Origin: Lepidodermella squamata
Taxonomy: Eukaryota; Animalia; Gastrotricha
Direction: 5' to 3'
NCBI GenBank assembly: GCA_047495785.1
Contig: JBLDXI010000010.1
Location: forward strand, 496,001-560,000
DNA length: 64,000 bases
Below, piece after piece: positions 5,994 to 49,722 of this stretch (the first letter of the stretch is position 1; every line of letters starts with the position of its first letter). The notes under the pieces were generated by a model. The model worked only from the letters and a program-made list of their open reading frames with translations. It searched no databases and had not been told where the DNA came from. The translations under genes and the position numbers were made by a program.

Positions 5994-8900
5994 AACAGAA
6001 ATTGGAATGCGGAATTCATGTCTGAAATTAGGCTGGAAAGCTCAAAATTTAACTTCGAAAAAAACCTTAGCCTTGTGACTTGTGATGCTTGTGATGTTGG
6101 AATGTGGGAGAAACAAGATTCTTGGAAAAGCTACATTTTTTTAATTTTCAAGTTCAAAATGAAATGAAAATAAAATATGCAAAATAATTGAAATTCGAAT
6201 AATAAAATATAGATTTCTCGAATATTTTCTAATATGCATGTAATAAAATGCTCAAAATGTGGGTTTTTTATTATGGATTTGAAAAAAAATTTGAAATTTT
6301 CAATTTTTTTAAGGTGGCCATTTTTGAGAGTTCGCGGATTTTAGCGAATTAAATTCCAAATTTATACCGAAATGTTGGCTGCGATCGGTTGCATTTCTAT
6401 CAGCCACTCGATTTTCCAATTGAAAGATTGGTATTAGGATTACCTGGAAAAAAGTTTGCAAAATTATTCCATGTGAATTTTATGATATAAATCTATATTC
6501 TTGAAAAATTATTCCATTCCATGTGGAATATTTTCCCAATGGATTTTTCCCATTTTTGCCTTCGTGCCAATTTAAATAGAAATGAATAATTTCAAAAATT
6601 TCTTCAGTTCTATTTTTAGCTATTTTCCGTGGTCTTGTTTCTCCTTCATCACCCGACAAAATATTATATATTTGCGTTTCGAGTGGAAAAATAAAGCAAA
6701 CAAAACATGTCATTTTTACGGCGACATTTTCGTTACATTTCTTCACGATGTGTTTTTTTTATTCACCGTCTCGACAGTGATGAGTTGCTGCGACAAAGAG
6801 CGGAATAGAGTGGAAGTAGGTCTCTTTTTCAGCCTCGGCACGCGCCTTGTTGAGGCGTGTATTTTGCGTGCCGCTGTGTCATCGAGCTATTACTTGGCCG
6901 CGTGGGGCTCTCTAACAAACGAGCATGCTGACAACAACAACAATATCATCATACCTTCATCGTACACGCATAGCAGCAGTAGGTTAGGGTATTTTATGGC
7001 GCAGCGAACACATTAAGGCGGACGCGCGTTATGATACAAGGAGGTGGTGGTATAATAATAATTGTATCACGTGCGAATTCGCCGTAATAATAATAATCAA
7101 GCTGGTAGCCGACAGTACACAAGATGAAGATGACGATGATGATGGTGACTCAGCCGCCCGAATGAATGGCCGGTATAGCTGCACTCCACCCTCTTCAGAA
7201 CTTTTTAGTCGAGAATATCGCCTTCATTAGCTTGGCGTTCGTTTAGCTTGAAGAGATATTTAGCGCCACGAGTGAGCGCGCAGGTTGTAGATGCGCGCCA
7301 CCGCCGGTGCGCGCGCGCGCGACATCTTGGCGCGCAAAATAATGGGCACATTAAATAGACATGACGCGAGGTATTTCGGCGGAAAATATGCGCGTGCGCG
7401 CGACATTATATCGCAATGAAAATATTATTATTATACCGCTTAATATGGCTAACAATAATAATTTTTATACCTGCGGTAAAGCGGGTTAACATGAAACACG
7501 TGCCGTCGCCCGCCACATCGCTTTTGACTTGGCATAAGCTACTGGGCCTAATATAGGTACTTAGCTAACTATTAAAGCCCTGTCGTCTCGTTCGAGTTCA
7601 CGCTTCGCCAGTAATAGACGTGGTTAAGCGGGAGAAGAAAACGTCGTCGGCTGGAATAATCTTGTGAATGAATAACGCGCTTTATAATATGAGCTCATTA
7701 CTCTAATCCTACGCTAAACAACAATAATTACTTATCTCTGAAAATTCCACATCTTTAGAATTAAGTGGCTGATTTTGCACGTTTTTTTTCGGTTCAATTC
7801 TTTTTAGGGTATTTTTCTGATATTTTTTTCGGAGGGCTTTTATTGCCACTCAATTACGCCAGAAAATTTCTATTATTTATTATCTCAACTTTCATCGCAG
7901 ATTTTACTGTCGAAATAACAAACAACACGGCGGAAAAACACGGCCAATTTCATTTTATCCGAGGTTCGATAAGATTTTGTAATCAAACCCACGCTATTTA
8001 TAGTGCGTGTTTCGAATCTCCCTACCGAACAATAATACCGCGATATAAAATAGCCACCCTGCTGTTGCACTGTTCAGCCCGGCCCATCAGGGTGCGTTTC
8101 GCTTTGTTGTGTTTTATCTATCTGACCGGAATTTTTCGCGGTATATAAAAACGCGTGTATAAATTGCGCCGAGATCTATAATCCTGTGGAACCCAGCGTG
8201 TGTGCGGTTGCATTTAGTGTTTTCTGTTTTAGCGTTATTTTATTGGCCATCATCATCATTATCAGTGTGTGTATATATGTAAGCATATATGAAAGCTTCG
8301 TCCTGATATCGCGTGCAAGCCTGCTGCGATTGATCAATCAACTCAGGTGAGCGCATTCCTATATATCCACCTCAGCATTGTTCGCGATTATAAATGATTA
8401 AGGTTAGGGCGACCCTCCTTCACGGACCATGGAAAATTACCTGATGGGGCCTTAATAAATAATGGGTTAATAATTTACATTACCCGGTATAAGGTTTTAT
8501 CTTTATTAGCCACAATAACAATTTCATTGTTGCGATCACGCGCGCTCTCTCACAAATTAAAACATTATCGCGCTCGCCCGCCCACTCATTCGTTTTCACG
8601 CTGGTACCAATTATTGCGTATGTTACGCCCGCGATGAAAAATAACCGGAGATTTTCAGCAGTAAATAAAAACGTCTTATCGTTTTGTTTATTTTTCCATA
8701 CGGGTATAGCCGGCGGTAAGTATATAATAAACTAGCGGCGATGACTTTACTCGGCTTTCCTCTCTCTCAGGCTACTCAAACATCGACGACGCGCGATATA
8801 TACTGAGACAAAGGCGCCGCCTTAGTATCTTTTGTGCCCGCACACCTTCATATGGTATAAAACCACATAGCCAGCGTCTGGAAACATGTGTACACCTGAG

Positions 8901-9685
8901 TGCCGATCGTGTTTGCGCGCGCGGACACGCATGCGGACTATGTGTCTGTTTTTAAGGTGGCGACGACGTAGCGATGCGCGCTATGATACAGGGCAATTAT
9001 ATGCACCGTTGAGGTATTTCATCATCCATCTTTCAGCTTTCAGCCGGATCACAAGCACGCCCGTGAAAACGTGCGGCGTTTCCGCTGTTCGTCTTTTCGA
9101 CGGCAAACACACACAGCGTTTCACGCCGCAGATGAGGTATGCCGTTTATAGATGTTTACTGGGGGTCTGGTGCCCGCGACTGCTCAACGTGCGAGACTTT
9201 GCTGCGTCTATATTTGGCGACGTATATACTGCGAATTTACTCACTACAGGCGATGCGTGCATTAATTATTGTCAAGTTTTAGCCGACCTCGGGCAGGGTG
9301 CAACGCACTTTCGGCTTAAGAGCTGCGCACACATCTCGCGCCCGCTGTCCACACCTTATATTCTAAATATATGCGCCAGCAATCTCATCCCGTTCATTGA
9401 GATGATACGGCGATGATACTCATCGCGATATCACAAGAGACCTACTCCGCGGCCTTCTCAAAGGTCGCGATTACTAACCGTGCGGAGAACACTTAAGCCC
9501 GCATGAATGCTAAGGAATTATGTGCCTATCAACTGCATCCTTATCCTATAACCATTTTCAGCCTAGAAAACATTTACTCTGCCTTGAAAGGCACGGTGAA
9601 AAGCTTACGGACTTGGAGGACATCTAGACCATTATTTTTCTCTAGATATCTTATATCACTAGAAATGACAATTTATTAGTCCGAG

Positions 9686-20339: not shown

Positions 20340-23300
20340 TCACGACTGGTCAGAATCCGACCCAGACGAGCCGATGGCCAGGGTTGAATTCGACACACCC
20401 GAGCCTGGGGTTGTCGAATTTTTACCGATCAGACCCCACAAACTGATAGCAGACAGCGCTCGGTTGATGGCCGACTGCCACTCGTAAAAGTCCTGCTTCG
20501 TATCGGCGGCGAACCACAGGCTGGGGTTGTGCGTTGCCTGGTCGTAACTCGACGTGACCGAGCTAGAGGAGGACGCGCCCGACCCAGCCGCTGCGTTCGC
20601 GTTGAGGAGCAGTTCCAGGGTCCACGGCCTCGCGCAGTTGTAGGGCGACACCTGTTTCGCCTCGGAGCAGGTCGGCGCGACGTTGTGCAGGTCGAAGCAG
20701 GGCAGCGGCGGGCTGGGGTTCGCCGGGTCCGCGTCCGGTTCCGAGTAGAAGAAAATTTCAGTAGTCCTGAGGTGCGCCCAGCGGCGGTGCCAGGCCGGCA
20801 GGGAGGCGCCGGTTGAATTTGTGAATAGGGTCAGGAAACCGCTGTGTTCAATCGGGGCGGAGAGGGCGCAACGGGCGCGGAACTTGACCGACGGCATGAG
20901 CGGCCATTTCATGGGCATGCGGGGCAGCGAGACGGAGGCGAGGCCGCGCGGGCTGGTCGCGGCCTGGCGGATGATTTCGCGCGTGATTGCGGCCGTGTCG
21001 ACGCAGTAGAAGGCGGAGCCGAGGCAGGGCGCGGCCTGGGTGCTGCTCGGGATGGCGTGGTGCGGCGGCGACGTCGGGTGGTGTGAGCCTAGAATATGGG
21101 TTAAGGCATCGCCCAAAATAGGTACCTTTAGGGATTTAATGGCGGCTAAGCAACTGAGATCCGCACCTGTTTTCTTGTGCTTCGACAACGTGTCGTAAGC
21201 GGCTGGCACGTCGCGCGGCAGCGTCTGAAAAAATTACATAAAAATAAATTAAAATAAATGTCTTCAACAGCAATCGAGCGTTCATTCACAAGCAACAAGA
21301 AAGAAAAATTAGTAATATCTAAATGTTAGATGTTAGATTTCTACAATTATTCAAGCCCGTTAGTCGATTTTCACGCGATGTTAATTTCAAGCAGAAGATA
21401 GAGCGTAGCATTATAAAATTATAATTGTTTTCAACGTCGCTGAGTTCAGCGGACCATTTCTGGCGGACCACACTAATCACCCCTAATATCCTAACCACGG
21501 ATACCATCGAAGTGTGCCACTTGAGTGCCAATTGTAGCAAGGTGTGGCGCATCTATTGAGACTAATAATGACCGAAAATTGCATTCCATCTTAACAAGGG
21601 GCTGATTTAAATTTAAATTTCAAGAATTTGTCGAAAATTTTAACAGAAAAAATGCATGAGCATAATTAATAAATTATTCGGAGAATCGGTATAGAATGCA
21701 AATTCTCGTAAATTTCCAAAGATATTATGTCAAGTCTTCATCATTTCAAAGCTCATTCTCTGAATTTTTCAAGGCGGCTGATGCTGTGTGATTAAATTCC
21801 ATCTTTGAAAGAAAAGGGATCTGAGACAAAAGAAACACTTCCCTTAATCTAGAACCATAATATCTCCCTATTTCGAACCCTGATAACCTTTTCAATTCAG
21901 CTACCCTAACACGTCATTTTCAGAGAGGAAAATAAATTTAGGGGTCTAGCTCTAAATTTGAAGCTACAGCACTAGATTTTCCCCAAAATACGGATTTTCG
22001 AGTTTTACAACAACTTGGAATTTCTTATTATCAAGCCGAACGATAGACCTATTACACACATTTAGCGCTAGTCGGTCATATTACGAGTTATAATTCAGCC
22101 TGAAGTGCCGATATCAATTCTTATCCAAAACGGTTGATTGATTTGAAAAATCAATCAACCGTTTTGGATAAGAAAATCTACCCGAAATTGAATTTTTCAA
22201 CTAGACTATTTCAAAAGCTCGTCTGCCTGATCTGCCTGATTTTTCAATTACTGTGAATTTGACTCATATTTTGATCCTGTTCGCCGCAAAATCACGAAAA
22301 TGTTAGTAGGATGCATATTGATCTTACCAATCCGTAAATTGAGATCTTCATGTTGAGCTCATTGTCGCGATTTTCTCCCTCACCGCCGCCCATCGCCCGC
22401 ACATCGGAGAATTGCAGCATATTAGGGAATTGGATGCAGCCATCGCGCGCCTCGTCCGTTCCGATGCACACCGTATGCAAAACAGTCGGCCCGTGGCGCA
22501 GCAAAATTATGAAGTAGTAAATCTCTCCAGAATCGCCTAAAGATTATTTTCAAAAAAATTAATTAAAAATTTTGAAGTGATCAGGATTTTCGCGTAAATT
22601 ACCAGCGTTGATTTGCCGCATTCTGAATTCGTGTTTCAGCTGCAACTGAATGTCGGAGATGGTAACAGTTACCGGCGGGATGGCATTTTCCGATTTCTCA
22701 ACAATTGTGGCACGACGAGTTCCAACTCGCTTGATTTCGGAATGAATCGCCTGAAAAAAGGAAAACAAATTAGGAGATAATTTACAATTTTCGTAAATTA
22801 AATGAAATCATGAGATCTCGACGCAAAGAAAAATCAGAGAAATTCGGATTCATTTAACATTTTAAAAACAGAGTGTCCACAAGTCTCGCGACCATTTTAC
22901 AATTTTGATACGTTCAGCATGAAATTTATCAATTTTTCCATCATTTTTCTATCAGGAGCATCTCCAATCCTTTGCCCGCTATTTCAAAATTCGCAGAAAT
23001 TACAAATTTACCCGTGAATACCCGATGGTAACTGATTTGGTAATTTTCGGTATTTTAACCGGATTGACCAAATTTCTCCGAACTTATCAGTTTCCAGTCA
23101 GAAAAAAAATTGCAATGCATTATTTTCCCAGATTAATTGAAAGGAAACTGGATTTCTATCAAATTATTCCTCCAGAATTTAAAGAATCAACGGGGCTAAA
23201 ATCCCTTTAGATTGTTTCTAAGAGGTAAATTTCGATATTTCTAAATTTTGTAGATAATATAAAACAAATGGAGACCTTCCGACGCTCGTTTGCAACAAGT

Positions 23301-31938: not shown

Positions 31939-33187
31939 TATCGATTCCATATCAGCTTTGTGACTCTGTATGAGATCATGGCATCATACTGCTGGGTAAC
32001 GCTTGTATGCGTGTGTATTCTTACTCCTGAAAGAATAGGCAGCCTTCGTCGAATTATTGACGGAAAGAGAAGCGGAAATGAGATTATCACACTCAGGCAT
32101 CTGGCGGCATCCGGCATACTACCAAAAATAGGAATCTTGTGTTTACGTTCTGGATCAAGCTTGAAAACTTGAGAATTCATATGCGATCAATCGCTTCATT
32201 TTCCGAGCGTAAAAAGTACCTATCTTACAAATCTAAATCAATTTACCTGGGAATAAAATCGCTTAGTCTCAGGCGATCGTAGCTATACACGCAGAAAACG
32301 CTCTTTGATCATAATCGTCATCGATCGAATAACTATTTACACACACTTCCAGGACAGAATACACGCACACACCGGTAAAAGGTTGGAACGAATACGCATT
32401 GCCTGAAAAGTCAATAAAATTCGATTATACATCCTTCTTCAGCGCGCAATATTTCATGCGAATTTATCAGTTTGTACATGGTAATCAGAGTACTCCTTCC
32501 TCATCTCATTTCTTTAGCTTGGCGCGCACCAGTAGGAAAGCTGCATGCATTTTTTAACGTTATTATCACATGGAGACCGACGTATAGATCCAGCGATCGA
32601 AATTTATACAAACTCACGTGTGCATATTCGATAAAAATAAAATGCTGGCTACGCCAGCACATCATGCATGTAGGCGCGCGAGATCGCTCTTAGCGATTCG
32701 CCCATTCTTCTTTCCTGTGTCTATGCCACTATAAGCGACAGTCTTTCTATACATTTCCGATTATCAATCGTATATAGCTGCGCCGTAGTGTAGTGTTCTC
32801 CCTAGTCGATCGTTCATGTGTGTCGGTGGCGCTCAGCAATTTTTGATTACATGTGCACAAGCACACATCTATGCAGACAAAATATTATTACACTGGCTGC
32901 AAGCAATTATTACATACGCGCTTCGAGAGCAGTAATAATAAAATACAATAACTGCGTATAGCAATCGCTCGTATTGTTTGTAAATGCGTGATGGGCTTTG
33001 ATGATCACAGCGACAATTTCCCTTTCAAATGATAAGTCATGCTTTCAGCATGGCGTATCGCGACAGCCTCTCTCTATATAATATTCACTGTCGCTTCAGC
33101 CCAACTTTTCCCTCAGACCGGAAATAATTCCACCGTTGATCCGTATAAATTTTTAGGGATTTATATAGTCAGAATTAAGCTACAAAA

Positions 33188-34225
33188 ATGGCATTAGGCG
33201 TACTCCCAACAATGAATTCAGAAAAAATAGGAATGGCCGCGATGACGGTGCTCATCATCCTGGCCTTTCTCTTTCAAGCTGTATGCTTCGCTTTCAACAA
33301 TTGGTACCGCATGGACATCGGTCCTTTCATGATCCGCACTGGTTTGTGGGAGATGAAAATCTACGACGATCAGAACATCACTGGTCTTGACCGGCGTCAT
33401 CATGAAAAAGCCGAATTCCGTTTCTACGACGACATTTGGAAATCGGCGATGGACAAGATGGAGAAAATGGCAAAAACCGGGCCACCGAAAAAGTCGAAGA
33501 AGGGCAAGAACAAGAAAGTACTTGATGACGACGATGATGATTCCGATGGAAGCGAAATCGAACACTTCAAAGCTGGAGAAAACTGGTTCACCCTACCTCC
33601 TCCACTGCCTGGGACGATTTGGGAGGACAGTCAGTCAAATCTCAGCTCAGCCGAGGCTATGTACTCTATGTCGTGGATGGCAACTTTCATTTTGATGTGT
33701 CTTTTCGCTTTCCATCAATTCCTGCCAAATTTTAAGGTGACTATACCTATAATGAGAATATTCTGCGCTTCGCTTTTTATAGCGGGCTTCTTCACGATAA
33801 TAGCCGTAGCTTGTTATGGAAATGCGATGCCTTCCATTTGCAAGGAACTCACTGCCGCTTATGAAAATTCGCCGAACCCGAAATTTGCCGAGGCTGCACG
33901 CATATCATCTGACTGCTCATTCAGCGGCGGATATTCGATGTCAATATTCTCAGGTATTTTCCTCATGGCAACCGGCGTCATGGCTGCTATTCGCATTCGT
34001 CAGGTTCAGCTGGGCGAGAGCTTTGACATTACTACTGCCGCTGGTACTGCCGTCAACTTTGGCAAATCATTACTAGGCGGCGCAGCTGGCCGTAGCGCCC
34101 CTCCAGCCGGAGCCCAAGGTAACTTTGATTGGAATCAACCACCCCCAGGTGCTGCTTTCTCAGCTGGCTACGACCAGGGCAACTACCAAGCCACCGGAAA
34201 CCAAAGCTGGGAACGTCTTGAGTAG
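33188..34225 (+). CDS. Claudin/PMP22-superfamily-like tetraspan membrane protein, intronless
   Basis: Four hydrophobic segments, a W...GLW motif after TM1, GYS at the start of TM4 and a Gly/Pro/Gln-rich tail. A TATA-like tatataa lies near 33075. Confidence 0.7.
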   Translation: MALGVLPTMNSEKIGMAAMTVLIILAFLFQAVCFAFNNWYRMDIGPFMIRTGLWEMKIYDDQNITGLDRRHHEKAEFRFYDDIWKSAMDKMEKMAKTGPPKKSKKGKNKKVLDDDDDDSDGSEIEHFKAGENWFTLPPPLPGTIWEDSQSNLSSAEAMYSMSWMATFILMCLFAFHQFLPNFKVTIPIMRIFCASLFIAGFFTIIAVACYGNAMPSICKELTAAYENSPNPKFAEAARISSDCSFSGGYSMSIFSGIFLMATGVMAAIRIRQVQLGESFDITTAAGTAVNFGKSLLGGAAGRSAPPAGAQGNFDWNQPPPGAAFSAGYDQGNYQATGNQSWERLE

Positions 34226-34431: not shown

Positions 34432-35422
34432 TCAAATTCTAAGTCTTGTGTTCTCACAAAGCGCGTGAACACCCGAGGCAATAATTGTCATTAGACGGAG
34501 AGATAGCATGCGTTCGCCAGCATTTCGCAGCAACTCAAGGACAACCACGTTAGGCACCTTGAATGGGAGCACCTGCATCCAGTTCCCGTTGCGAATGAAT
34601 ATTTCAGTTTGCGTTAAATCTTTGAAAGACCCATCGCTCCTATTAAACCGGCAGTACAAAGAGTCATCAACTATTTCTGTTGTTGAGTTGTATGCATCGA
34701 CAATCAAATGGCAAGGCGAATCATTGCCGATTGTTACGTTGTAGCTTTGAACCATAGGATTTCCTCCGAAAGTAAGCCCTCGGCCCTAGAGAGTAGATTT
34801 TAGCTTGATATCTTTAGCGCTCATTATTAAGTCTTACATTGATTTGAAGGATATCTGACCCAATCGATTGAACTCCAGTTACACTAGGATCCGGAAAGTA
34901 GATCATGGACAGTGACCGCACCAAAGCCAAGCGGGATTCAGACGACAAATTGACATGCCTCGCATGAGCAAATTCGATCGGTTGATCTTCGTAGTAAAGT
35001 AAGTAGCAGAATCTTGATTGCAAAGGCACAAATTCACAGCCACCAAATTTTCCTAGCGGTTCAACGAAAATAGAGCTATTCGAAACATCTTCACCAAATC
35101 TTGGCCGTATTTCAGAAATATTTAGCGACTTGCAGTTTATTGATGATGGCTCAGTGTCGCAGGGTTGTGTCACCTTCTTATCAGAACCAGCGGGCGAGGT
35201 GTTAAAGTTGAAAGCATCGAAGTAGAATAGGTGGAAAACTGCTGGTTTGACCGGACCTTCCAACGGTTCCAATAACAGGAACTTGAAATCGTTACCCCCA
35301 CTTTTTAGGGACCATCTGTATGACGCACTAATTATACTCGGTCTAAGTGCTGTTCCAGAGCATAAAAAATGTAGCAAAATAGAAGCTACGCGGAAGATTG
35401 ACGGGCCTGAGAAAAGATGCAT
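34432..35422 (-). CDS. Kinase-less MET-like IPT3-IPT4 ectodomain protein, copy A (intact). Exons 35422-34838 and 34785-34432
   Basis: Signal peptide, WSLKSGG, VEPLGKFGGC, YFPDPSV and ILQIN|GRGL across the 52-nt phase-0 intron. Ends in a weakly hydrophobic tail with no kinase. Confidence 0.8.
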
Positions 35423-36345
35423 TTCTACCTTGGACCGAATACATGGCTAGGAAAGCGGTTACTTTGTTTATCAGCGTAACACAGAAAGCAAACAACGGTT
35501 GCCTACGCACTTACTGGCATTAAAAACGAAGGTGGGTTATCTAAATATAGCGGAATTTTCGGGCTGTGCATTGAAATCTGAGCTAGAAACTACACGAGTG
35601 CTATCAAACCTTGAGTTCGACACCTAATAACAACACGCAGCAGATTAAGTATGAAGATCCTGATAGAATTATGCCGCAGCATCAATTTTATTACTCATTT
35701 ATAATATTAGATGAATTTGTTGTGCTTAATTTCGGACTTTGAGCTTTGAGCTTCAGTAACTGGTAACTTGCGTGTTTTCATGTTCTCTCGCTCCTGAGGC
35801 CATGATGTATGACGTCATAAAGAATGATGCTGGTTCCTCTTTGCCGTCAGCTTGAGTGTTTTTTTCTGTGTGAGTCATTCTCAAACTACAGCACGAGACG
35901 ATAATTTTTTAAACGTGCTCAACAAACAGGCTTCTTAGGTGTAACAACACCTTACCTTGCGACGACTACGGCGGTAGAACCAACATCGACATCATCAAAC
36001 CGAGAGCCACTCGGCCACGACTTTATTCTTTTTCCACAAAATCACACAGTTTAACCGTGACGATTGATACAAAACAACGAAAATTTAAATACTGCCACGA
36101 TTGAACAAGCACATCAACACCTTTTTTTCTGTCAAACAGTTTTCATCTTTTTCTAAGAAAAATTAATGAATTTGGCGGTAAATATTCGCGTCATGCTTTG
36201 CTCATGATGTGATTATGAACACGAAAACAACGTAAATAGTATTTAAAACACGGGAAAGAGATGCACTGACACAGTTTAAAAAATATGACAGCATAATATG
36301 CGAGCATTTTTCACAGGCGACAAAACAAGTCCCCGTAAATCGGGC

Positions 36346-36591
36346 TCACCTGTCGATCGATTGATTATTGTTGTTAGAATCTCGCTGGGCGTGAATATTT
36401 ATAACTTGATAGCCGTTACTTTTGCTATCACTAAATGGGCTAGGGGAGGCTAATGATATATCATCATCTGTTGTCCTTATTGGAGTTAATGTGTGCGATT
36501 GATAGTTGAGATGGCCTTTAGTCGGTTTGAACCGCCTAATGCTGCCAGCAAGAGCACTGAAGTCGCTGTAGTTGGAAGAGATTGAGGACGT
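36346..36591 (-). pseudogene. Duplicated 3' fragment of the RTK3 last exon (possible new terminal exon of copy B)
   Basis: Exact copy of 38389-38634. Confidence 0.75.
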
Positions 36592-36615
36592 CCAGCGATC
36601 GAAATTTATACAAAC

Positions 36616-37465
36616 TCACGTGTGCATATTCCATAAAAATAAAATGCTGGCTACGCCAGCACACATGAAAGACCCATCGCTCCTATTAAACCGGCAGTAC
36701 AAAGAGTCATCAACTATTTCTGTTGTTGAGTTGTATGCATCGACAATCAAATGGCAAGGCGAATCATTGCCGATTGTTACGTTGTAGCTTTGAACCATAG
36801 GATTTCCTCCGAAAGTAAGCCCTCGGCCCTAGAGAGTAGATTTTAGCTTGATATCTTTAGCGCTCATTATTAAGTCTTACATTGATTTGAAGGATATCTG
36901 ACCCAATCGATTGAACTCCAGTTACACTAGGATCCGGAAAGTAGATCATGGACAGTGACCGCACCAAAGCCAAGCGGGATTCAGACGACAAATTGACATG
37001 CCTCGCATGAGCAAATTCGATCGGTTGATCTTCGTAGTAAAGTAAGTAGCAGAATCTTGATTGCAAAGGCACAAATTCACAGCCACCAAATTTTCCTAGC
37101 GGTTCAACGAAAATAGAGCTATTCGAAACATCTTCACCAAATCTTGGCCGTATTTCAGAAATATTTAGCGACTTGCAGTTTATTGATGATGGCTCAGTGT
37201 CGCAGGGTTGTGTCACCTTCTTATCAGAACCAGCGGGCGAGGTGTTAAAGTTGAAAGCATCGAAGTAGAATAGGTGGAAAACTGCTGGTTTGACCGGACC
37301 TTCCAACGGTTCCAATAACAGGAACTTGAAATCGTTACCCCCACTTTTTAGGGACCATCTGTATGACGCACTAATTATACTCGGTCTAAGTGCTGTTCCA
37401 GAGCATAAAAAATGTAGCAAAATAGAAGCTACGCGGAAGATTGACGGGCCTGAGAAAAGATGCAT
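36616..37465 (-). CDS. Kinase-less IPT ectodomain protein, copy B (new C-terminus). Exons 37465-36881 and 36828-36616; possible splice 36619-36566 extends it to 36346
   Basis: Identical to copy A up to DGSF, then reads into the insert (MCAGVASILFLWNMHT*). Confidence 0.6.
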
Positions 37466-38388
37466 TTCTACCTTGGACCGAATACATGGCTAGGAAAGCG
37501 GTTACTTTGTTTATCAGCGTAACACAGAAAGCAAACAACGGTTGCCTACGCACTTACTGGCATTAAAAACGAAGGTGGGTTATCTAAATATAGCGGAATT
37601 TTCGGGCTGTGCATTGAAATCTGAGCTAGAAACTACACGAGTGCTATCAAACCTTGAGTTCGACACCTAATAACAACACGCAGCAGATTAAGTATGAAGA
37701 TCCTGATAGAATTATGCCGCAGCATCAATTTTATTACTCATTTATAATATTAGATGAATTTGTTGTGCTTAATTTCGGACTTTGAGCTTTGAGCTTCAGT
37801 AACTGGTAACTTGCGTGTTTTCATGTTCTCTCGCTCCTGAGGCCATGATGTATGACGTCATAAAGAATGATGCTGGTTCCTCTTTGCCGTCAGCTTGAGT
37901 GTTTTTTTCTGTGTGAGTCATTCTCAAACTACAGCACGAGACGATAATTTTTTAAACGTGCTCAACAAACAGGCTTCTTAGGTGTAACAACACCTTACCT
38001 TGCGACGACTACGGCGGTAGAACCAACATCGACATCATCAAACCGAGAGCCACTCGGCCACGACTTTATTCTTTTTCCACAAAATCACACAGTTTAACCG
38101 TGACGATTGATACAAAACAACGAAAATTTAAATACTGCCACGATTGAACAAGCACATCAACACCTTTTTTTCTGTCAAACAGTTTTCATCTTTTTCTAAG
38201 AAAAATTAATGAATTTGGCGGTAAATATTCGCGTCATGCTTTGCTCATGATGTGATTATGAACACGAAAACAACGTAAATAGTATTTAAAACACGGGAAA
38301 GAGATGCACTGACACAGTTTAAAAAATATGACAGCATAATATGCGAGCATTTTTCACAGGCGACAAAACAAGTCCCCGTAAATCGGGC

Positions 38389-41300
38389 TCACCTGTCGAT
38401 CGATTGATTATTGTTGTTAGAATCTCGCTGGGCGTGAATATTTATAACTTGATAGCCGTTACTTTTGCTATCACTAAATGGGCTAGGGGAGGCTAATGAT
38501 ATATCATCATCTGTTGTCCTTATTGGAGTTAATGTGTGCGATTGATAGTTGAGATGGCCTTTAGTCGGTTTGAACCGCCTAATGCTGCCAGCAAGAGCAC
38601 TGAAGTCGCTGTAGTTGGAAGAGATTGAGGACGTAGCCGAGTCAACCGACGGGCTCGACTTTACCGGGTTGGGGGTGCTGCCATTGTTGAAACTGTGGGA
38701 GAACCAGGAGTTTCTGGAGTAAGAAAATCCGGGCGTTGAACCCATTCCACTGATTGCTGAGTCGGGTGGGGTGGGCGTACCAGGTCGAGACGTAGCAATG
38801 AAAACGCTGTCAATATCTCCCGATCCATGGCCTTTTTCACTGGAAGTCAAGCGGTTATATTTCCTGAAAAATGAATCGGCTGAAACTGAGATGAAATTCA
38901 ATCATCAGAAAACTTACGATAAAACAGGGGATTTCGATATTGTGTCATAAGCTGTCTGGCTGCCGTTATTGGGGCTAGCAGTAGCCGATGCTACCCCTGA
39001 ATCCGTAGTAGCATAGCCGGCTGACGAAAATTGCGTGTTATTGGAAACAGGGGAGCTCGCCTCATTGGAATGATCGATGTCATAACCATCGACAGATGTG
39101 TTCTCGTCAGAATCTTCATCGCCGTCTTCTTTAGCTACGTTGATAGTCGTCTCGCCACTCAGAGCGAGTAGGGAGTCTTCGAAATTCAAATTCAACTGCT
39201 CGTCAAGAGGCTCGCGATATTCCCAACGATTCTATAAAACCGTAATGGTTAAGCTGAAATTTGTGACTTGAGTAAATTCCTACCTCAGGGCTGGTCCAAA
39301 GTGGGCTTTTTGGGTCATTCAGTAGATTTTCGGTCAACGTGACCAGTTCAGCAAAAGTTGATCTCGCTGATGAGTGCTCGTTCCAACAAGACATCATCAG
39401 TTCATAGAGACAATCGGAAATAATTGGCAACTTGGGCAAACGCTGCTTATCGTCACAGATGTGGCGTTTCAGGTAGGATGCCTCAATAGCAGGATACGGC
39501 CTCGCCCCTCGCGTTGTTAATTCCCACAGAACAACACCATAAGCCCACTAAAAAGTTCAATTGAAAAACTTGCGAAGAACAAATAGTTTATAGGAACATA
39601 CCACATCCGATTTTTCGGAGAAAGTGCCAAGGGCCAAACTTTCTGGGGCCATCCATCTAACTGGAAGTGGTCTGCCGTGGTTTTTAATCAAATAGCTCGG
39701 AATTTCGTAAATTGCGTCAGTCTCCTCGCAACGTCTGGACAGACCGAAATCAGCCACCTTGACGATGCGTTGTTTATTTAACCTAGAGCAATAATTTGGC
39801 CTAATTTTGAGAACAATTTTTCATCAGGGATAAACTTACAGGCAATTACGGGCGGCCAAGTCTCGATGGATAATCTTTTTGTCTGCCAAGTACTGCATGC
39901 CCTTAGCTATCTGCCGAGCGAAATCGACAAGAAGAGGATCGCTGATTTGATTCGAAGCCGTCTGCACGAACTTTCTCAAATCTCCAGCATCCATCATCGG
40001 CAATACAACACCAGGATAACCATCAATGCTCGTAACGCCATGAGCGCCAAGTACGTTCGGATGGTCGAAAGAGAACATCAGCACAGCTTCGCTGAAAAAT
40101 TCTCTCAGCTGATCGACGTCGGAATACTTCTGAATAAATTTGACAGCAATGTCTTCGCCAGGTGCCTTGAGAGAGTCAGCTGAATCACCGCTAGCAGTAC
40201 GCTTGAGTTCCTTAGCGTTGAGTAATTTTCCGCTACGAACAATACCGAAAAATCCATTGCCAAGCTCGTGGCCCTGACGAACCAAGGCGGAATCGATTTG
40301 ATGCTGTTTAACGACTTCTGCCAAATCCGGTGGAAGTAGCCGCATCAACTGGTCGAAATCATCAGGTTCCATTGTCTTAGCATCCTTGGCATGAAGCGAC
40401 TTCATCCATTTTCCAAATGGTCCAGGTATGGTATTGCCCAATTTTTCCGACGCCTTGATAGCAGCCGGCGAATAGCTGTATCGCAAACAGCAGACGGCTA
40501 TGCAACCAGCGGCGATTGCAATTGAAACAACGCAGACAGGGATTACTATCGCTACGATAATTCCAACCGGAGTTCCGTGATCCGCGGTAACAGGAGCTGG
40601 CGGCGGTCTTGGTGTTCCGTTGCCAAGCGGGTACATTTCTGAGGTGTTGTATACCCAGTTGCCATGGTGGATTGCTACGTCAACACTGATTTCGGGCAAA
40701 TATCTCAGATGTTCGACGCCGTAGATTTGTTCAAGGGTGTCAATCAATCGAGCATCGTCAAAGTCGCAAATCAGTTGCGTATTCGTAATTTGGGGCTCGG
40801 GTGCTTTAGCGGTCACATTTTCGTTAGTATTTTTGACAGTTGTAGTGGTCGCAGTAGACAGGGGTGTACATCTTGTTTGACCGCCAAGAAGGGATATATT
40901 GTACGACCTCATAATTACAACATAGTCTGGATTGAAGCCGTTACCCTAAAAATAAATGAAATAAGAAAGGTCCGATGGAAGATTTTAGTGACTCACGGTA
41001 ATTTTGACTCTTCTTCTAGATATGAAGGTCACATTTGAGACCACTGGGTCCGGGAAGTAAACGAATGACATCGTTTGCCGCAGCATACCAAGTGCCTCAT
41101 TCGGGAATTGGGATCCTCCAAACGCCCCAAAATAGCCGATCGTAGAGCCATCTCCGGTTAGTGTGAAGCACAGACGCTTTTTGCCGGCCGAATATTTGCA
41201 ACCTCCAAATTCTTGCAACGGCTCGACACTTAGGGTGCTATTTGTGTTATCGGCATTGAAATCAGGGTAAAGGCCAGAAATGTCCGGGAAAGGGCAAAAT

Positions 41301-41608
41301 ATGTGCATGCCATTAACTCGGCATGCTTCCGTCAAGTTGAGATCAGGGATTTTCCCAGAGTTATTTTCTCCAAAATAATGGATGATGAATCTCGTTGTGT
41401 TGTAGGGTAGTGACTGACCGCCTGGGTTAAGCAGTAAAACGTCCAACTCGGCACCGCCGCTTCTGAAGGAGTATTTGACCGGGAAATTGAGGATTCCGGG
41501 AGGGGCAGGTCGTGGGTTCAACAGGGCCGCGAATGGGTTGGCTGCAGGGGTAATAATTTGGGCCGCAAGGGACGAAAACAGCGAGCAGATGATCACAATA
41601 GATAGCAT
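38389..41608 (-). CDS. MET/RON-like receptor tyrosine kinase 3. Exons 41608-40997, 40945-39840, 39782-39602, 39547-39284, 39231-38918, 38863-38389
   Basis: Signal peptide, YSFRSGG, VEPLQEFGGC, YFPDPVV, TM, GNGFFG, IAVK, HRDLAARN, DFG, PVRWMAPE and a long Ser/Tyr-rich tail. Introns of 51-57 nt keep the frame. Confidence 0.9.
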
Positions 41609-42670: not shown

Positions 42671-43748
42671 CTAATAAATTGTTCTGAATAATGAATGCTT
42701 CAAGCTGCCTTCTCTTCTGCCAGCCGACGATTGAGCACCAGGAGGAACTGCATCGTTGAGCTGAGCCTTCACCGCTGCCGCAGGGGCTGCAGTTAGTTCT
42801 GTTGACGCCATTACAACTGGAACAGTAGTGGCGAAATTGCCAACAGTAATTTTTGCGGATAAACCACTGCTTGTCGCACTGAGATTGACGGAAGACGGAA
42901 AATCACTGGGTTGAAGAGCGCACGACAGCATATCGGGCTTTATGTCATCGAATATGACCTTGCACGGCGCTTCGACATTATTGGGGAACACCAATGTGAC
43001 TAAGAAGAGTCGAGACATTTTCACAGGATTTTCGCCTGTAATTTGAGCACCCTATTAGCATCAATTGAATGGTTCAACATTTCTAGGAGGGAATATTAGC
43101 ACTTACGGAAATATTAAGGAGACTTTTTTGAATGTTAAGCTGAGCGCCTGTGAAGCTAGGATCTGGTGAGTATCTAATTGATTGTGCTTTGCGGACAAAC
43201 GGCTCGGCCATTGCACTGGTCGATGGCGGAAAATTGACTGAAAGTTGGCCCGGCTGAACTGCGAAGGAATAGCATAGTCGCGGAACATTAATCCTTCGAC
43301 TTGCTGGTGGCAGAGGTTGACAGCCATTGAGTTGTCCCCTCGGCTCGACCATCATCGTTGTGAAATTTGGTGATGAGAAAATTGTTGACATTGGAATGTT
43401 TTCATCCGCCAAAATTTTAGCCACGTTCGGCGCTTTACAATCCACGCGGATTTCGTTGCTCAAAGGCGACGGCCGACATGGCTGCGTGATAGTTTTTGTA
43501 GGCTCTGTCGACGATCCGCTGCTGTAGTAGTAGAGATTAAACTCCACGGTCACGTTTCGACAAGACGCAGGAATAGTAGGTGCCATGAGGAAAAGCACTT
43601 GAAAATCTGTTCCGCCACTCAGAAATGCCCAGTGGTCAGGCAGGTTCATGATAGTAGGAAATCCAGCACATGGCGACGCAGCCGGTAAAGGATCTGACAG
43701 GACTAGTCTGGCAATGAATAGCACGAGTCCAATTTTTTGTAATGTCAT
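42671..43748 (-). CDS. Kinase-less, apparently secreted MET-like IPT3-IPT4 protein (paralog C). Exons 43748-43107 and 43051-42671
   Basis: Signal peptide, WAFLSGG, VEPRGQLNGC, LCYSF, YSPDPSF and LLNIS|GAQI across the shared phase-0 intron. No TM or kinase. Confidence 0.8.
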
Positions 43749-44445: not shown

Positions 44446-45462
44446 ATGATGGGGGACTTTTTAAAAAGGTGGTTACATGTTAGTGAAAGTTCGAAAACGC
44501 CTAGATGGAGCGCGAACTTAGCATCAGCTATTCGATTTTCAAGCAAAGCGAGACGCTTGTCCCATTTCTTCAGAAAAATGGACTTGCAATGTAGACCACC
44601 AACAAATGTCGACGAATTCAAGGAACAAATGGTAAGTTTCTTTACCTAAAAGGAAATGTTCCTAATAATTGTTCAACAGGCGAAATTATACGGACCTCTT
44701 TTGCATCGGTCTGCTTTGATTGGTGATTTATCGAAAATTAAATCAGCAATTCGCGATGTGGTTAATATTGCTGAGAGTACTGTCGCCTTGCCAAGTCTTC
44801 GAAATGAAATCGATCTCGTTATTCGCGTGTTAATCGAACACCGCGATCGCCACGATTTCAACCGAACAGTATTGCTACAGTCTGCAATGAATGGCCACCT
44901 GCACGTGGCCAAATATCTGGTCGAAGAGCTGAAAGCTGACGTATTCGTCCGCGACGCTCTCAACGGCTCAACCGCAATTCATCTAGCTTGCCAAAATGGA
45001 CACTTACCCGTAGTCAGGTATTTGCTCGAGTGGAACCCTCACTTACTCGAAATTGAAGACCTCAGTCAAAACACTTCGCTTAACGCCGCTGCCCTAGCTG
45101 GTCATTTGCCTGTTGTGAAGTATTTGGCTAGTGAAAAGCATGCCAATGTCGAGAATATTAGCGAACCTAACGGAGCTACCCCTCTACTACAAGCTGCTCG
45201 AAAGGGGCATTTGGAAGTTGTGCGGTTTCTCATCGACAATGGGGCGAATTTCTTCGCTCGAGAAACTACAGCAGAAATGGGAGATATGGCTATCCATCTG
45301 GCCGCGGCTTTCGGTCACGTGGAAGTTGTGAAGTACCTATTACAAGAATGCCCAGATTTGCTGGAAGCCGAAAATGCGATGGGCCTCAATCCTTACGGCT
45401 ACGCTATGCTAGCCAACCAATGGCCAGTCGCTCGGCTAATCGAAAATGAATTCCGCTTTTAA
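44446..45462 (+). CDS. Ankyrin-repeat protein 1. Exons 44446-44631 and 44680-45462
   Basis: Repeated TA/PxHxAAxxGHxxVVxxL motifs. Intron 44632-44679 is in frame. Confidence 0.85.
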
Positions 45463-46868: not shown

Positions 46869-48087
46869 ATGGGATCATCACCGACGGCCTTAAATAATAA
46901 CGATAAGAAGGTAATTCATTCTGATGGAAATAATCTCTCTTTGATGAAGACGCTTGAAATTGTAGATTTTCGAGGAGCTTGCAGCATGGTGCCATCGATT
47001 TGCTAAATCCGGAGACGAACAAGAGCTCACCGACTTGTTCACTCAAATCGATAAAATCAATCGGAAACTAGCTCGGAAACTGATTCGCCATCAAGATGCA
47101 GAAGATTCCGAGAGGAGCCCACTTCTGCAGGCCGTGAATTCGAAAAATTTGGCGCTGGTTCACCTGTTAATCGAGAAGTATCGAGCTGAAACTTCGGACT
47201 TCGACAAAAACGGTCACACAGCCTTGCATCTTGCGGCGCTGAATGACGATTACGAAGTAGCCAAGTACCTAATGACGCAAGATTCTAAACTGGTCGAATC
47301 GATTGATTTTGCGCAGAATTCAGTCATCAACATTGCTGCTAGTCGAGGGAACTTGAAGTTACTCGAGCTCTTTGCGGAGAGCAAACGATGGAAAAATCAA
47401 AGAATGCTGGAGAACCATGGGAACAACGGTCGGACTCCATTACTAGAAGCTGCAGCCGAAGGTCATCTACCTGTGATCGAGTTTCTCATCAAAAAAGGTG
47501 CCGAAATCTCCGCAATTGAGGATTCAGATTTCGACGCGTTCACTCTGGCTGCGATGCATGGTCATCTTGACATTTGTTTGTTTCTTTTCGAGAAGGGACT
47601 CGTGGCAAATATGAACGTCCGCCGAGGTGAAAAAGGCGTGACAGCACTTCATCTCGCGGCACAGAATGGCCATGCTTCCGTTGTAGCCTTTCTCATCAGA
47701 ATCGCTGCGAATGTATGGACAAGGTCTAAAGACCGACGAGCTGCATCTGCCATTCACCTGGCTGCTGAGATGGGGCATCTTGAAATCGTGAAACTCTTAC
47801 TCGCAACAGATGGAGATTTGCTCGAAGTTCCTGACGGTTATGGCAATACGATACTAAATCTGGCTGCTACGAATGGGCACAGCAAAATTGTCGATTACTT
47901 AATTTCTCACAATGCTAACATCGAAAATCAAGGATTTTTGTATGGTTTGGGAATGATGAACTCGGTACTTCAGGCGAAGTTGGGTGGGCACGCGGAGATA
48001 ACACAGCTTTTGATGCGCAAGAAGGAATATGAAAGTGGAAAAGCATCGCCACCGACCAGCAGAAGTAAAGTAGAATTCAAGCTTTGA
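46869..48087 (+). CDS. Ankyrin-repeat protein 2. Exons 46869-46910 and 46966-48087
   Basis: About 9 ankyrin repeats. First exon MGSSPT...KK joins in frame through intron 46911-46965. Confidence 0.88.
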
Positions 48088-48598: not shown

Positions 48599-49722
48599 AT
48601 GCCTAAATCCCCTATAGGACTTGTATTACTGGAATCTGAGCTACATACTTTCATCTCAATGCTGCTGTTCTTGTTTTCGACTGATTTAAGACCCGAAACT
48701 GAGCTATCCGAAGTGGAGGTAAGCAACATTGCTCTTCGAAAGATCTCCAATATGCTTTTCCTAAATAGGTTCCCGAAGACTTAGCTCACCTTTATCATGA
48801 ATTGGCCAAATCCGGAGCAACAGAGGAATTGGCTCATCTTCTAACAAAAATCTACGAAGCAAGTAAAAAACTCTGTCGGAAACTACTTCGCCACAAAGAC
48901 GGCTCGGATAATAACAGGACTGCTATTTTACAAGCTGCGTCTTCTGGAAATTTGTTAATGGTACAGCTGCTGGTAGAAAGGTACCATGCCAGGTTATCAG
49001 ATCAAGACAATCGAGGGTACACAGCCCTGCACCTCGCTACACTTCACGGCCACTTCGGGGTTGCAAAATACGTTCTACGGCACAGGCCGAAGATACTTTG
49101 TGTTTTGGACTGCATTCACGAATCAGCTATAAATATTGCTGCCAGTCGTGGGAAAGTGAAATTTCTTGAGCTGTTCCTGGAATCTCTTCCACGACGTTCT
49201 GGAATCTGCTTAGAAAATCGTGGGAAAAAAGGAAGAACTCCTCTACTTGCAGCAGCAGCGAATGGTCATTTATCAGCTGTTAAACTACTTGTGGACAATA
49301 ATGCCGATGTTTCAGCTGTTGACAGCTTGAAATACTGCTGCTTTGCACTTGCGTCCTGGCACGGCCATTTTGACATTTGTCAATATTTGCTAGGGAAAGG
49401 ATTGGTCTATAATGTGAATAAGCAGCACGGTGAGCAGGGAATGACGGCCTTGCATCTCGCAGCGCAAAATGGACACCTGCATGTCGTGTCAATGCTTCTC
49501 AGCTTCGGAGCAAATCTTTGCCTGAAAACGAAAGATAAACGAGCTTCACTTCCAATACATTTAGCAGCTGAGGCTGGTCATTTCCAAGTCGTCGAATTCC
49601 TGCTTGAAGTACGTAAAGACTTCTGTGAAGTTCCAAACGGAGAAGGAGATACCATTTTGAGATTAGCTGCTAAAAATGGGCATCCCGAAATCGTCGAGCT
49701 TGTGGTAGGAGGAAGCGATTAA
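48599..49722 (+). CDS. Ankyrin-repeat protein 3 (close paralog of protein 2). Exons 48599-48718 and 48769-49722; start uncertain
   Basis: Collinear with ankyrin protein 2 (AKSG..EL, RKLL/IRH.D, LEN.G..GRTPLL.AAA.GHL, G.TALHLAAQNGH). Confidence 0.85.

Follow-up and report, generated by a model that had tools for sequence, protein, structure and literature searches.

A perfect tandem duplication with a templated filler places a putative chimeric locus between a receptor tyrosine kinase gene and its decoy-like neighbour in an assembly of the gastrotrich Lepidodermella squamata

Can one tandem duplication give rise, at its junction, to a new intron and an in-frame chimeric receptor, as an earlier sequence-only reading proposed for a 64,000-nucleotide stretch of L. 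squamata DNA (the window hereafter; contig JBLDXI010000010.1, positions 496,001–560,000)? Comparing the window with itself by blastn, we found that positions 34623–36591 are identical to positions 36666–38634 over 1969 bp (100% identity, 0 gaps), and a separate repeat finding agreed with blastn on the spacing of this direct repeat, 2043 nt. The two arms (X1 and X2) are joined through a 74-nt filler (36592–36665). The duplicated unit starts within the last exon of a receptor tyrosine kinase gene (RTK3) and ends within exon 2 of the adjacent gene, a kinase-less paralogue of its ectodomain (the 'decoy' gene), thereby taking in 3′ sequence of the upstream gene and 5′ sequence of the downstream one. 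The repeat, the filler and the parent genes are laid out as follows.

34623..36591: tandem duplication copy X1, 100% match to 36666–38634; read on the minus strand, decoy copy A is represented by its 5′ part, the intergenic region is complete, and 246 bp of the RTK3 last exon are present together with the adjoining 3′ sequence
36592..36665: 74-nt filler, which encodes MCAGVASILFLWNMHT, a TGA stop and a GTGAGT donor
36666..38634: tandem duplication copy X2, 100% match to 34623–36591; it comprises decoy copy B in its 5′ part, the intergenic stretch and the genuine 3′ end of RTK3
32589..32666: DNA from which the filler was copied, intergenic, about 520 bp upstream of a plus-strand ORF at 33188–34225
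34432..35422, minus strand: decoy gene copy A, intact parent, two exons, 312 aa (exon 1, 35422–34838; intron, 34837–34786; exon 2, 34785–34432)
38389..41608, minus strand: RTK3, intact parent, delineated by its ORFs, Pfam kinase match and introns

With no substitution between its arms, the duplication would be extremely recent, and it may be heterozygous. It is the one perfect local repeat in the 277 kb sampled. Both parents are still open, copy A through its exons and RTK3 from 41608 to 38389 with its kinase motifs included, and the start codon of copy A is now preceded, at a distance of 923 bp, by the 246-bp RTK3 tail fragment.

The filler proved to be a copy of nearby DNA. Thus, positions 36591–36667 matched positions 32589–32666 in the same orientation at 97.4% identity, with one mismatch and one gap (blastn, window against itself), and, relative to this source, the filler has one substitution and one 1-nt deletion. 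The source is situated at distances of about 4 kb and 2 kb from the two breakpoints, and a search of the whole assembly (121.2 Mb, 151 contigs, GC about 43%) returned it as the sole other match of the filler. The hydrophobic stretch encoded here, which had been taken for a de novo creation, is therefore a templated copy of intergenic sequence. Microhomology at the junctions between the filler and the X arms is limited to T (1 nt) on the RTK3 side and TG (2 nt) on the decoy side. No Rfam family matched the whole window or the filler source, and the filler thus represents no known RNA gene, for example a spliced-leader RNA. The 1-nt deletion (36665–36667 compared with 32664–32666) is what places the GTGAGT donor in phase 2; with the source base restored in the filler, the proposed splice would fall out of frame.

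The surroundings of the source were also inspected. The X end at 36591 (…GAGGACGT) shares GACGT with the sequence six bases upstream of the filler start in the source (32575–32588, …CCGACGTATAGAT, followed by CCAGCG); this match may be the trace of a first priming site with subsequent slippage, or it may be due to chance. The GTGAGT of the source, considered as a working minus-strand donor at its original place, was ruled out, as no convincing coding ORF lies downstream of it and the site is situated between divergent genes. The neighbouring plus-strand ORF (33188–34225) is a single-exon reading frame of 345 codons, convergent with decoy copy A, and contains several hydrophobic segments, an acidic/lysine-rich loop and a Gly/Gln/Asn-rich tail; its Pfam search gave nothing significant, DUF5336 appearing only at an E value of 0.031.

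On the minus strand, the junction assembles a third locus. It opens with exon 1, intron 1 and 54 exon 2 codons of copy B, passes into the filler, and closes with the fragment of the RTK3 tail and the 3′ sequence next to it; the parts are as follows.

36881..37465, minus strand: exon 1 of copy B, a paralogue of RTK3 exon 1, encoding a probable signal peptide ahead of an IPT/TIG-like domain
36829..36880, minus strand: intron 1 of copy B (phase 0, 52 nt), with the same sequence as the copy A intron at 34786–34837
36620..36828, minus strand: copy B exon 2 (exon 2B), cut after ...RSDGSF and followed by 16 filler-encoded residues
36566..36619, minus strand: proposed intron, 54 nt, made of 29 nt of filler and 25 nt of former RTK3 coding sequence
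36346..36565, minus strand: RTK3 C-terminal tail fragment, 72 codons and a stop; identical to 38389–38608

The position of intron 1 is common to RTK3 and the other paralogues. Exon 2B reads ...RSDGSF and then MCAGVASILFLWNMHT, after which TGA at 36618–36616 ends the unspliced ORF. An AATAAA lies 319 nt beyond the stop of the tail fragment. Because the two decoy copies have 1169 identical bases upstream, the chimeric locus is probably transcribed like copy A, and a promoter in this region, if copy A has one there, would be that of copy B as well.

As regards the intron, our minus-strand reading agrees with the arrangement that had been put forward. The donor GTGAGT has its first base at 36619 and the acceptor ...ccaactacAG its last at 36566, which makes an interval of 54 nt, and the putative splice divides the codon ac/c in phase 2 on both sides. 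Removal of the interval takes out the TGA and brings the 72 tail codons into frame, the reading continuing as DFSALAGSIRRFKP...NYQSH...GYQVI...IDR to a stop at 36348–36346. An ORF running continuously over the junction is obtained only when the 54-nt interval is removed. The three AGs that follow, which would give intron lengths of 63, 78 and 84, keep the same frame as the acceptor at 36566.

The strength of these sites was estimated with a rough heuristic model based on 44 introns, obtained by ORF chaining from 264 kb of the genome, that is, a training set built from DNA alone. The junction donor stood at the 86th percentile of the training introns, the donors of which had been pre-selected by pattern, and ranked among the best 0.1% of all GT sites. 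The acceptor does end in AG at 36566 as had been described, but it is a cryptic AG within the Tyr-Ser codons of RTK3 and of middling strength only, at the 39th percentile of the training introns and among the best 9.5% of all AG sites. Judged against the 44 ORF-chained introns, the interval thus has GT-AG ends, consensus donor and acceptor, and a length near the mode (54 nt against a training median of 55 nt), which bears out the earlier statement that its length is typical. It is not AT-rich: its GC content is 43%, against a training median of 31% (10th–90th percentile, 19–37%) in a set filtered at 42% GC. Donor–acceptor pairs of equal strength occurred about 10 times per 528 kb of shuffled strand, so that the configuration at the junction is an uncommon coincidence. 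It can be no more than a coincidence, because the arms are undiverged and selection has had no time to shape it. On these grounds, splicing of the 54-nt interval is a plausible, unproven event. Introns have been proposed to arise by 'intronization' of exonic sequence and from repair-associated filler DNA, and the present interval resembles both proposals in combining a filler that carries a ready-made GTGAGT with former coding sequence ending in a cryptic AG; it differs in being predicted from DNA and in having a GC content above the range of the introns of this genome.

We then asked what kind of protein such a locus would encode, applying the tests exon by exon rather than to the joined protein. 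Left unspliced, the junction would yield a truncated secreted protein of 265 residues ending in ...LWNMHT, whereas removal of the 54-nt interval would append 72 residues of the RTK3 tail to give a predicted product of 337 residues. The hydrophobic run in exon 2B comprises 13 residues, and its best Kyte–Doolittle mean over 19 residues is 1.11, compared with 3.02 for the membrane helix of RTK3 and a usual cut-off of 1.6. By hydropathy, therefore, the run is no credible membrane span, as its shortness had already led the sequence-only reading to suspect. The kinase is absent from the chimera, which takes only the last 72 codons of RTK3. Moreover, the break deletes the ...I.NGNW... β-hairpin (GNW), the most conserved element of the second ectodomain domain in the family (alignment A3) and the best-predicted part of the exon 2 model; the last IPT-like domain is indeed truncated, as had been noticed. 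The appended tail is of low complexity, normally cytoplasmic, and not conserved in the paralogue at locus L025, and in a product lacking a membrane helix it would lie outside the cell. Accepting that the junction links the decoy 5′ part to the RTK3 tail through an in-frame GT-AG interval, we nevertheless cannot follow the designation of the product as a receptor, since it would have no kinase, no credible membrane anchor and a broken last IPT-like domain. Most likely, the locus would give a truncated protein that is secreted, whether or not it carries a disordered tail, and that is a by-product of neutral or mildly harmful effect.

The two parents belong to a wider family. In RTK3, a signal peptide and a two-domain ectodomain precede a strongly hydrophobic membrane helix, which is followed by a tyrosine kinase and a long tail; the kinase (Pfam PK_Tyr_Ser-Thr, 1.2e-31; motifs HRDLAARN, DFG and PVRWMAPE) is located at 40912–39203, outside the duplicated segment. 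Decoy copy A, with its 312 residues, has neither a membrane helix nor a kinase. Exon 1 of the decoy is about 30% identical to exon 1 of RTK3 and to four further genomic loci. One of these paralogues, L025, is a full receptor kinase, and ectodomain-only paralogues with two exons are found at 42671–43748 (minus strand) in the window, directly upstream of RTK3, and at L026:2635–3588 (minus strand) and L027:920–1829 (plus strand). Judging by these gene structures, kinase-less decoy members recur in the RTK3 ectodomain family. In our alignments, every invariant Cys and Gly and the phase-0 intron position are kept throughout this family of about 30% identity, and the parent decoy thus looks like a constrained gene. 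It resembles the soluble decoy paralogues of RTK ectodomains in consisting of an ectodomain only and in adjoining an RTK paralogue, although its identity to RTK3 is only about 30%; we infer that copy A may trap ligand.

The fold of this ectodomain was approached through predicted structures. The AlphaFold model of decoy exon 1 (pLDDT 69) matched plexin IPT2 domains best by VIA-align, with Z scores of 8.4 (plexin A4; rmsd 2.5 Å over 97 residues) and 8.2, and the structural matches listed below these were mostly IPT/TIG domains, including that of Met. Foldseek matches of the same model had E values of at least 0.02 and were not significant, the ESM Atlas gave no usable match for exon 1, and Pfam searches with exon 1 and exon 2 as separate pieces gave no match to TIG or any other family. 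The name 'IPT-like' is accordingly reasonable for the modelled exon 1 domain at the level of fold, while not proven. The decoy ectodomain apparently comprises two IPT-like domains, the second of which straddles the intron, explaining the poor model of exon 2 folded alone (pLDDT 57). In the predicted fold of its exon 1, copy A may thus be similar to the IPT ectodomains of the Met/plexin type; it differs from them in that neither exon has a Pfam TIG match and, in the chimera, in that the second domain is truncated.

What event could have produced this arrangement? In the explanation that we favour, to which we assign a probability of about 0.6, the duplication is real and the chimeric locus is non-functional or putative. 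A segment reaching from the RTK3 3′ tail across the intergenic region and over two-thirds of the downstream decoy paralogue, counted from its 5′ end, would have been duplicated in tandem, and the 74-nt patch copied from 4 kb away would have sealed the two copies, the parents being left intact. Such an event would belong to local template-switching or end-joining repair. The candidate routes would be tandem duplication through polymerase theta and failed SDSA, or FoSTeS/MMBIR, replication template switching of the latter type being compatible with the features of the junction as well. The substitution and the 1-nt deletion in the filler, together with arms that have no change in 1969 bp, fit an error-prone synthesis of the patch. 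That the duplication is real and that the chimeric locus is, in addition, transcribed and spliced at 36619/36566, so that a gene and an intron would have been born in one repair event, appears unlikely.

A duplication of this sort has close parallels in nematodes. In C. elegans helq-1 mutants, spontaneous tandem duplications of 0.1–10 kb (median, about 1 kb) have been described, with microhomology and occasional templated insertions at their junctions, and tandem duplications in this species have been attributed to failed SDSA intermediates that were rejoined by polymerase-theta end joining (PMC8654963). The present case is similar to these duplications in its size of 2 kb, which falls within 0.1–10 kb, in its microhomology of 1–2 nt, and in a same-orientation patch that was copied, with small errors, from nearby DNA; on the other hand, its template is 4 kb and 2 kb from the breakpoints, farther than the break-flanking templates of theta-mediated end joining. 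Young gene duplicates in worms and flies are commonly chimeric or partial (PMC3449122; PMC5460883). In the chimeras of Drosophila and C. elegans that derive from tandem duplications overlapping two adjacent genes (PMC5460883, PMC3449122), the duplication likewise runs from the 3′ portion of one gene into the 5′ portion of its neighbour, and the parents likewise remain intact while a third locus takes its promoter and 5′ exons from one gene and its 3′ end from the other. Unlike in those chimeras, the frames are joined here only through a hypothetical cryptic intron, and the duplication is known from the assembly alone. A chimeric locus at the junction of a tandem duplication is therefore an already known kind of event, of which the present locus is a new example.

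Other explanations have to be weighed against a real and recent duplication. The L. squamata assembly was described as derived from a single animal by MDA and HiFi sequencing (122 Mbp, 157 contigs, N50 3.9 Mbp, GC 43%; PMC11660948), and the contig studied here thus probably comes from MDA-amplified DNA of one animal. MDA produces local chimeras, so that a chimeric phi29 molecule might have been over-amplified and taken by the assembler as its primary path, in which case the animal would carry a single X and no chimeric locus. We regard such an artefact as possible, though less probable than a real duplication. MDA chimeras are mostly intramolecular and local (PMC1855051), the junction shares with them a local intramolecular template switch and short microhomology, and the chimera screen applied to the assembly covered chimeras between contigs only and not local ones (PMC11660948). 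More than 85% of MDA chimeras, however, are inverted with a deletion (PMC1855051), whereas all three pieces are direct here and two switches would be required. In the C. elegans control of the assembly study, moreover, the MDA assembly showed 206 rearrangements relative to the reference and the unamplified one 207 (PMC11660948). That X1/X2 is without a second example in the sampled sequence also speaks against an artefact of amplification. Phi29 is a high-fidelity enzyme, with which 2 changes in 78 copied bases are unexpected.

The contrast between the filler, with 2 changes in 78 nt relative to its source, and the arms, with 0 differences, could alternatively mean that the duplication is older, with gene conversion or unequal exchange homogenising its arms and with two changes accumulating by drift in the unpaired filler. 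This is very improbable: the conversion tracts would have to span all 1969 bp up to both breakpoints, and error-prone synthesis of the patch accounts for the contrast in one step. It is just as hard to believe in a working newborn chimeric gene, whose transcript would lose the junction intron and whose protein would be anchored or tethered by the hydrophobic stretch and signal through the Tyr-bearing tail. The in-frame splice arithmetic, the strong donor and the modal intron length are what such a gene would have, and the duplication brought along both the promoter and the 3′ flank of RTK3. The hydrophobic run of 13 residues with its mean of 1.11 argues against it, as do the missing kinase, the last domain without its conserved hairpin, and a tail that would be extracellular for want of a membrane helix; the zero divergence, again, leaves no time for selection. 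In addition, a word search of a 5.8-billion-protein collection with exon 1, exon 2B including its filler residues, and the RTK3 last exon gave no match, the search having no positive control for this locus.

If the duplication is real, it would provide a zero-divergence example of one local repair event that makes a chimeric locus and leaves the parents intact, in which a repair filler imported a ready splice donor and a 1-nt copying error set the reading phase. If, in addition, the interval is spliced, the new intron would have received its 5′ splice site ready-made in the templated patch and its 3′ part from former coding sequence, a snapshot of the process that shuffles receptor-kinase ectodomains and tails. 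The locus exposes no new kind of system, and its main value lies in illustrating a mechanism; it is usable, too, as a test case of whether local perfect duplications in a probably MDA-derived assembly are biological or not.

Several further features came to light in the window and nearby. A control self-comparison revealed two long arrays with a unit of about 99 bp and 73–82% identity, 6 kb apart, at L018:1291–2750 and 7739–9393 (C10:360001–370000). At 22118–22174, the window contains a near-perfect palindrome of 57 nt, 94.7% self-complementary. Finally, as read from the ORF list only, three consecutive plus-strand ORFs at 44656–45462, 47035–48087 and 48802–49722 look like ankyrin-repeat proteins and are apparent paralogues of one another.
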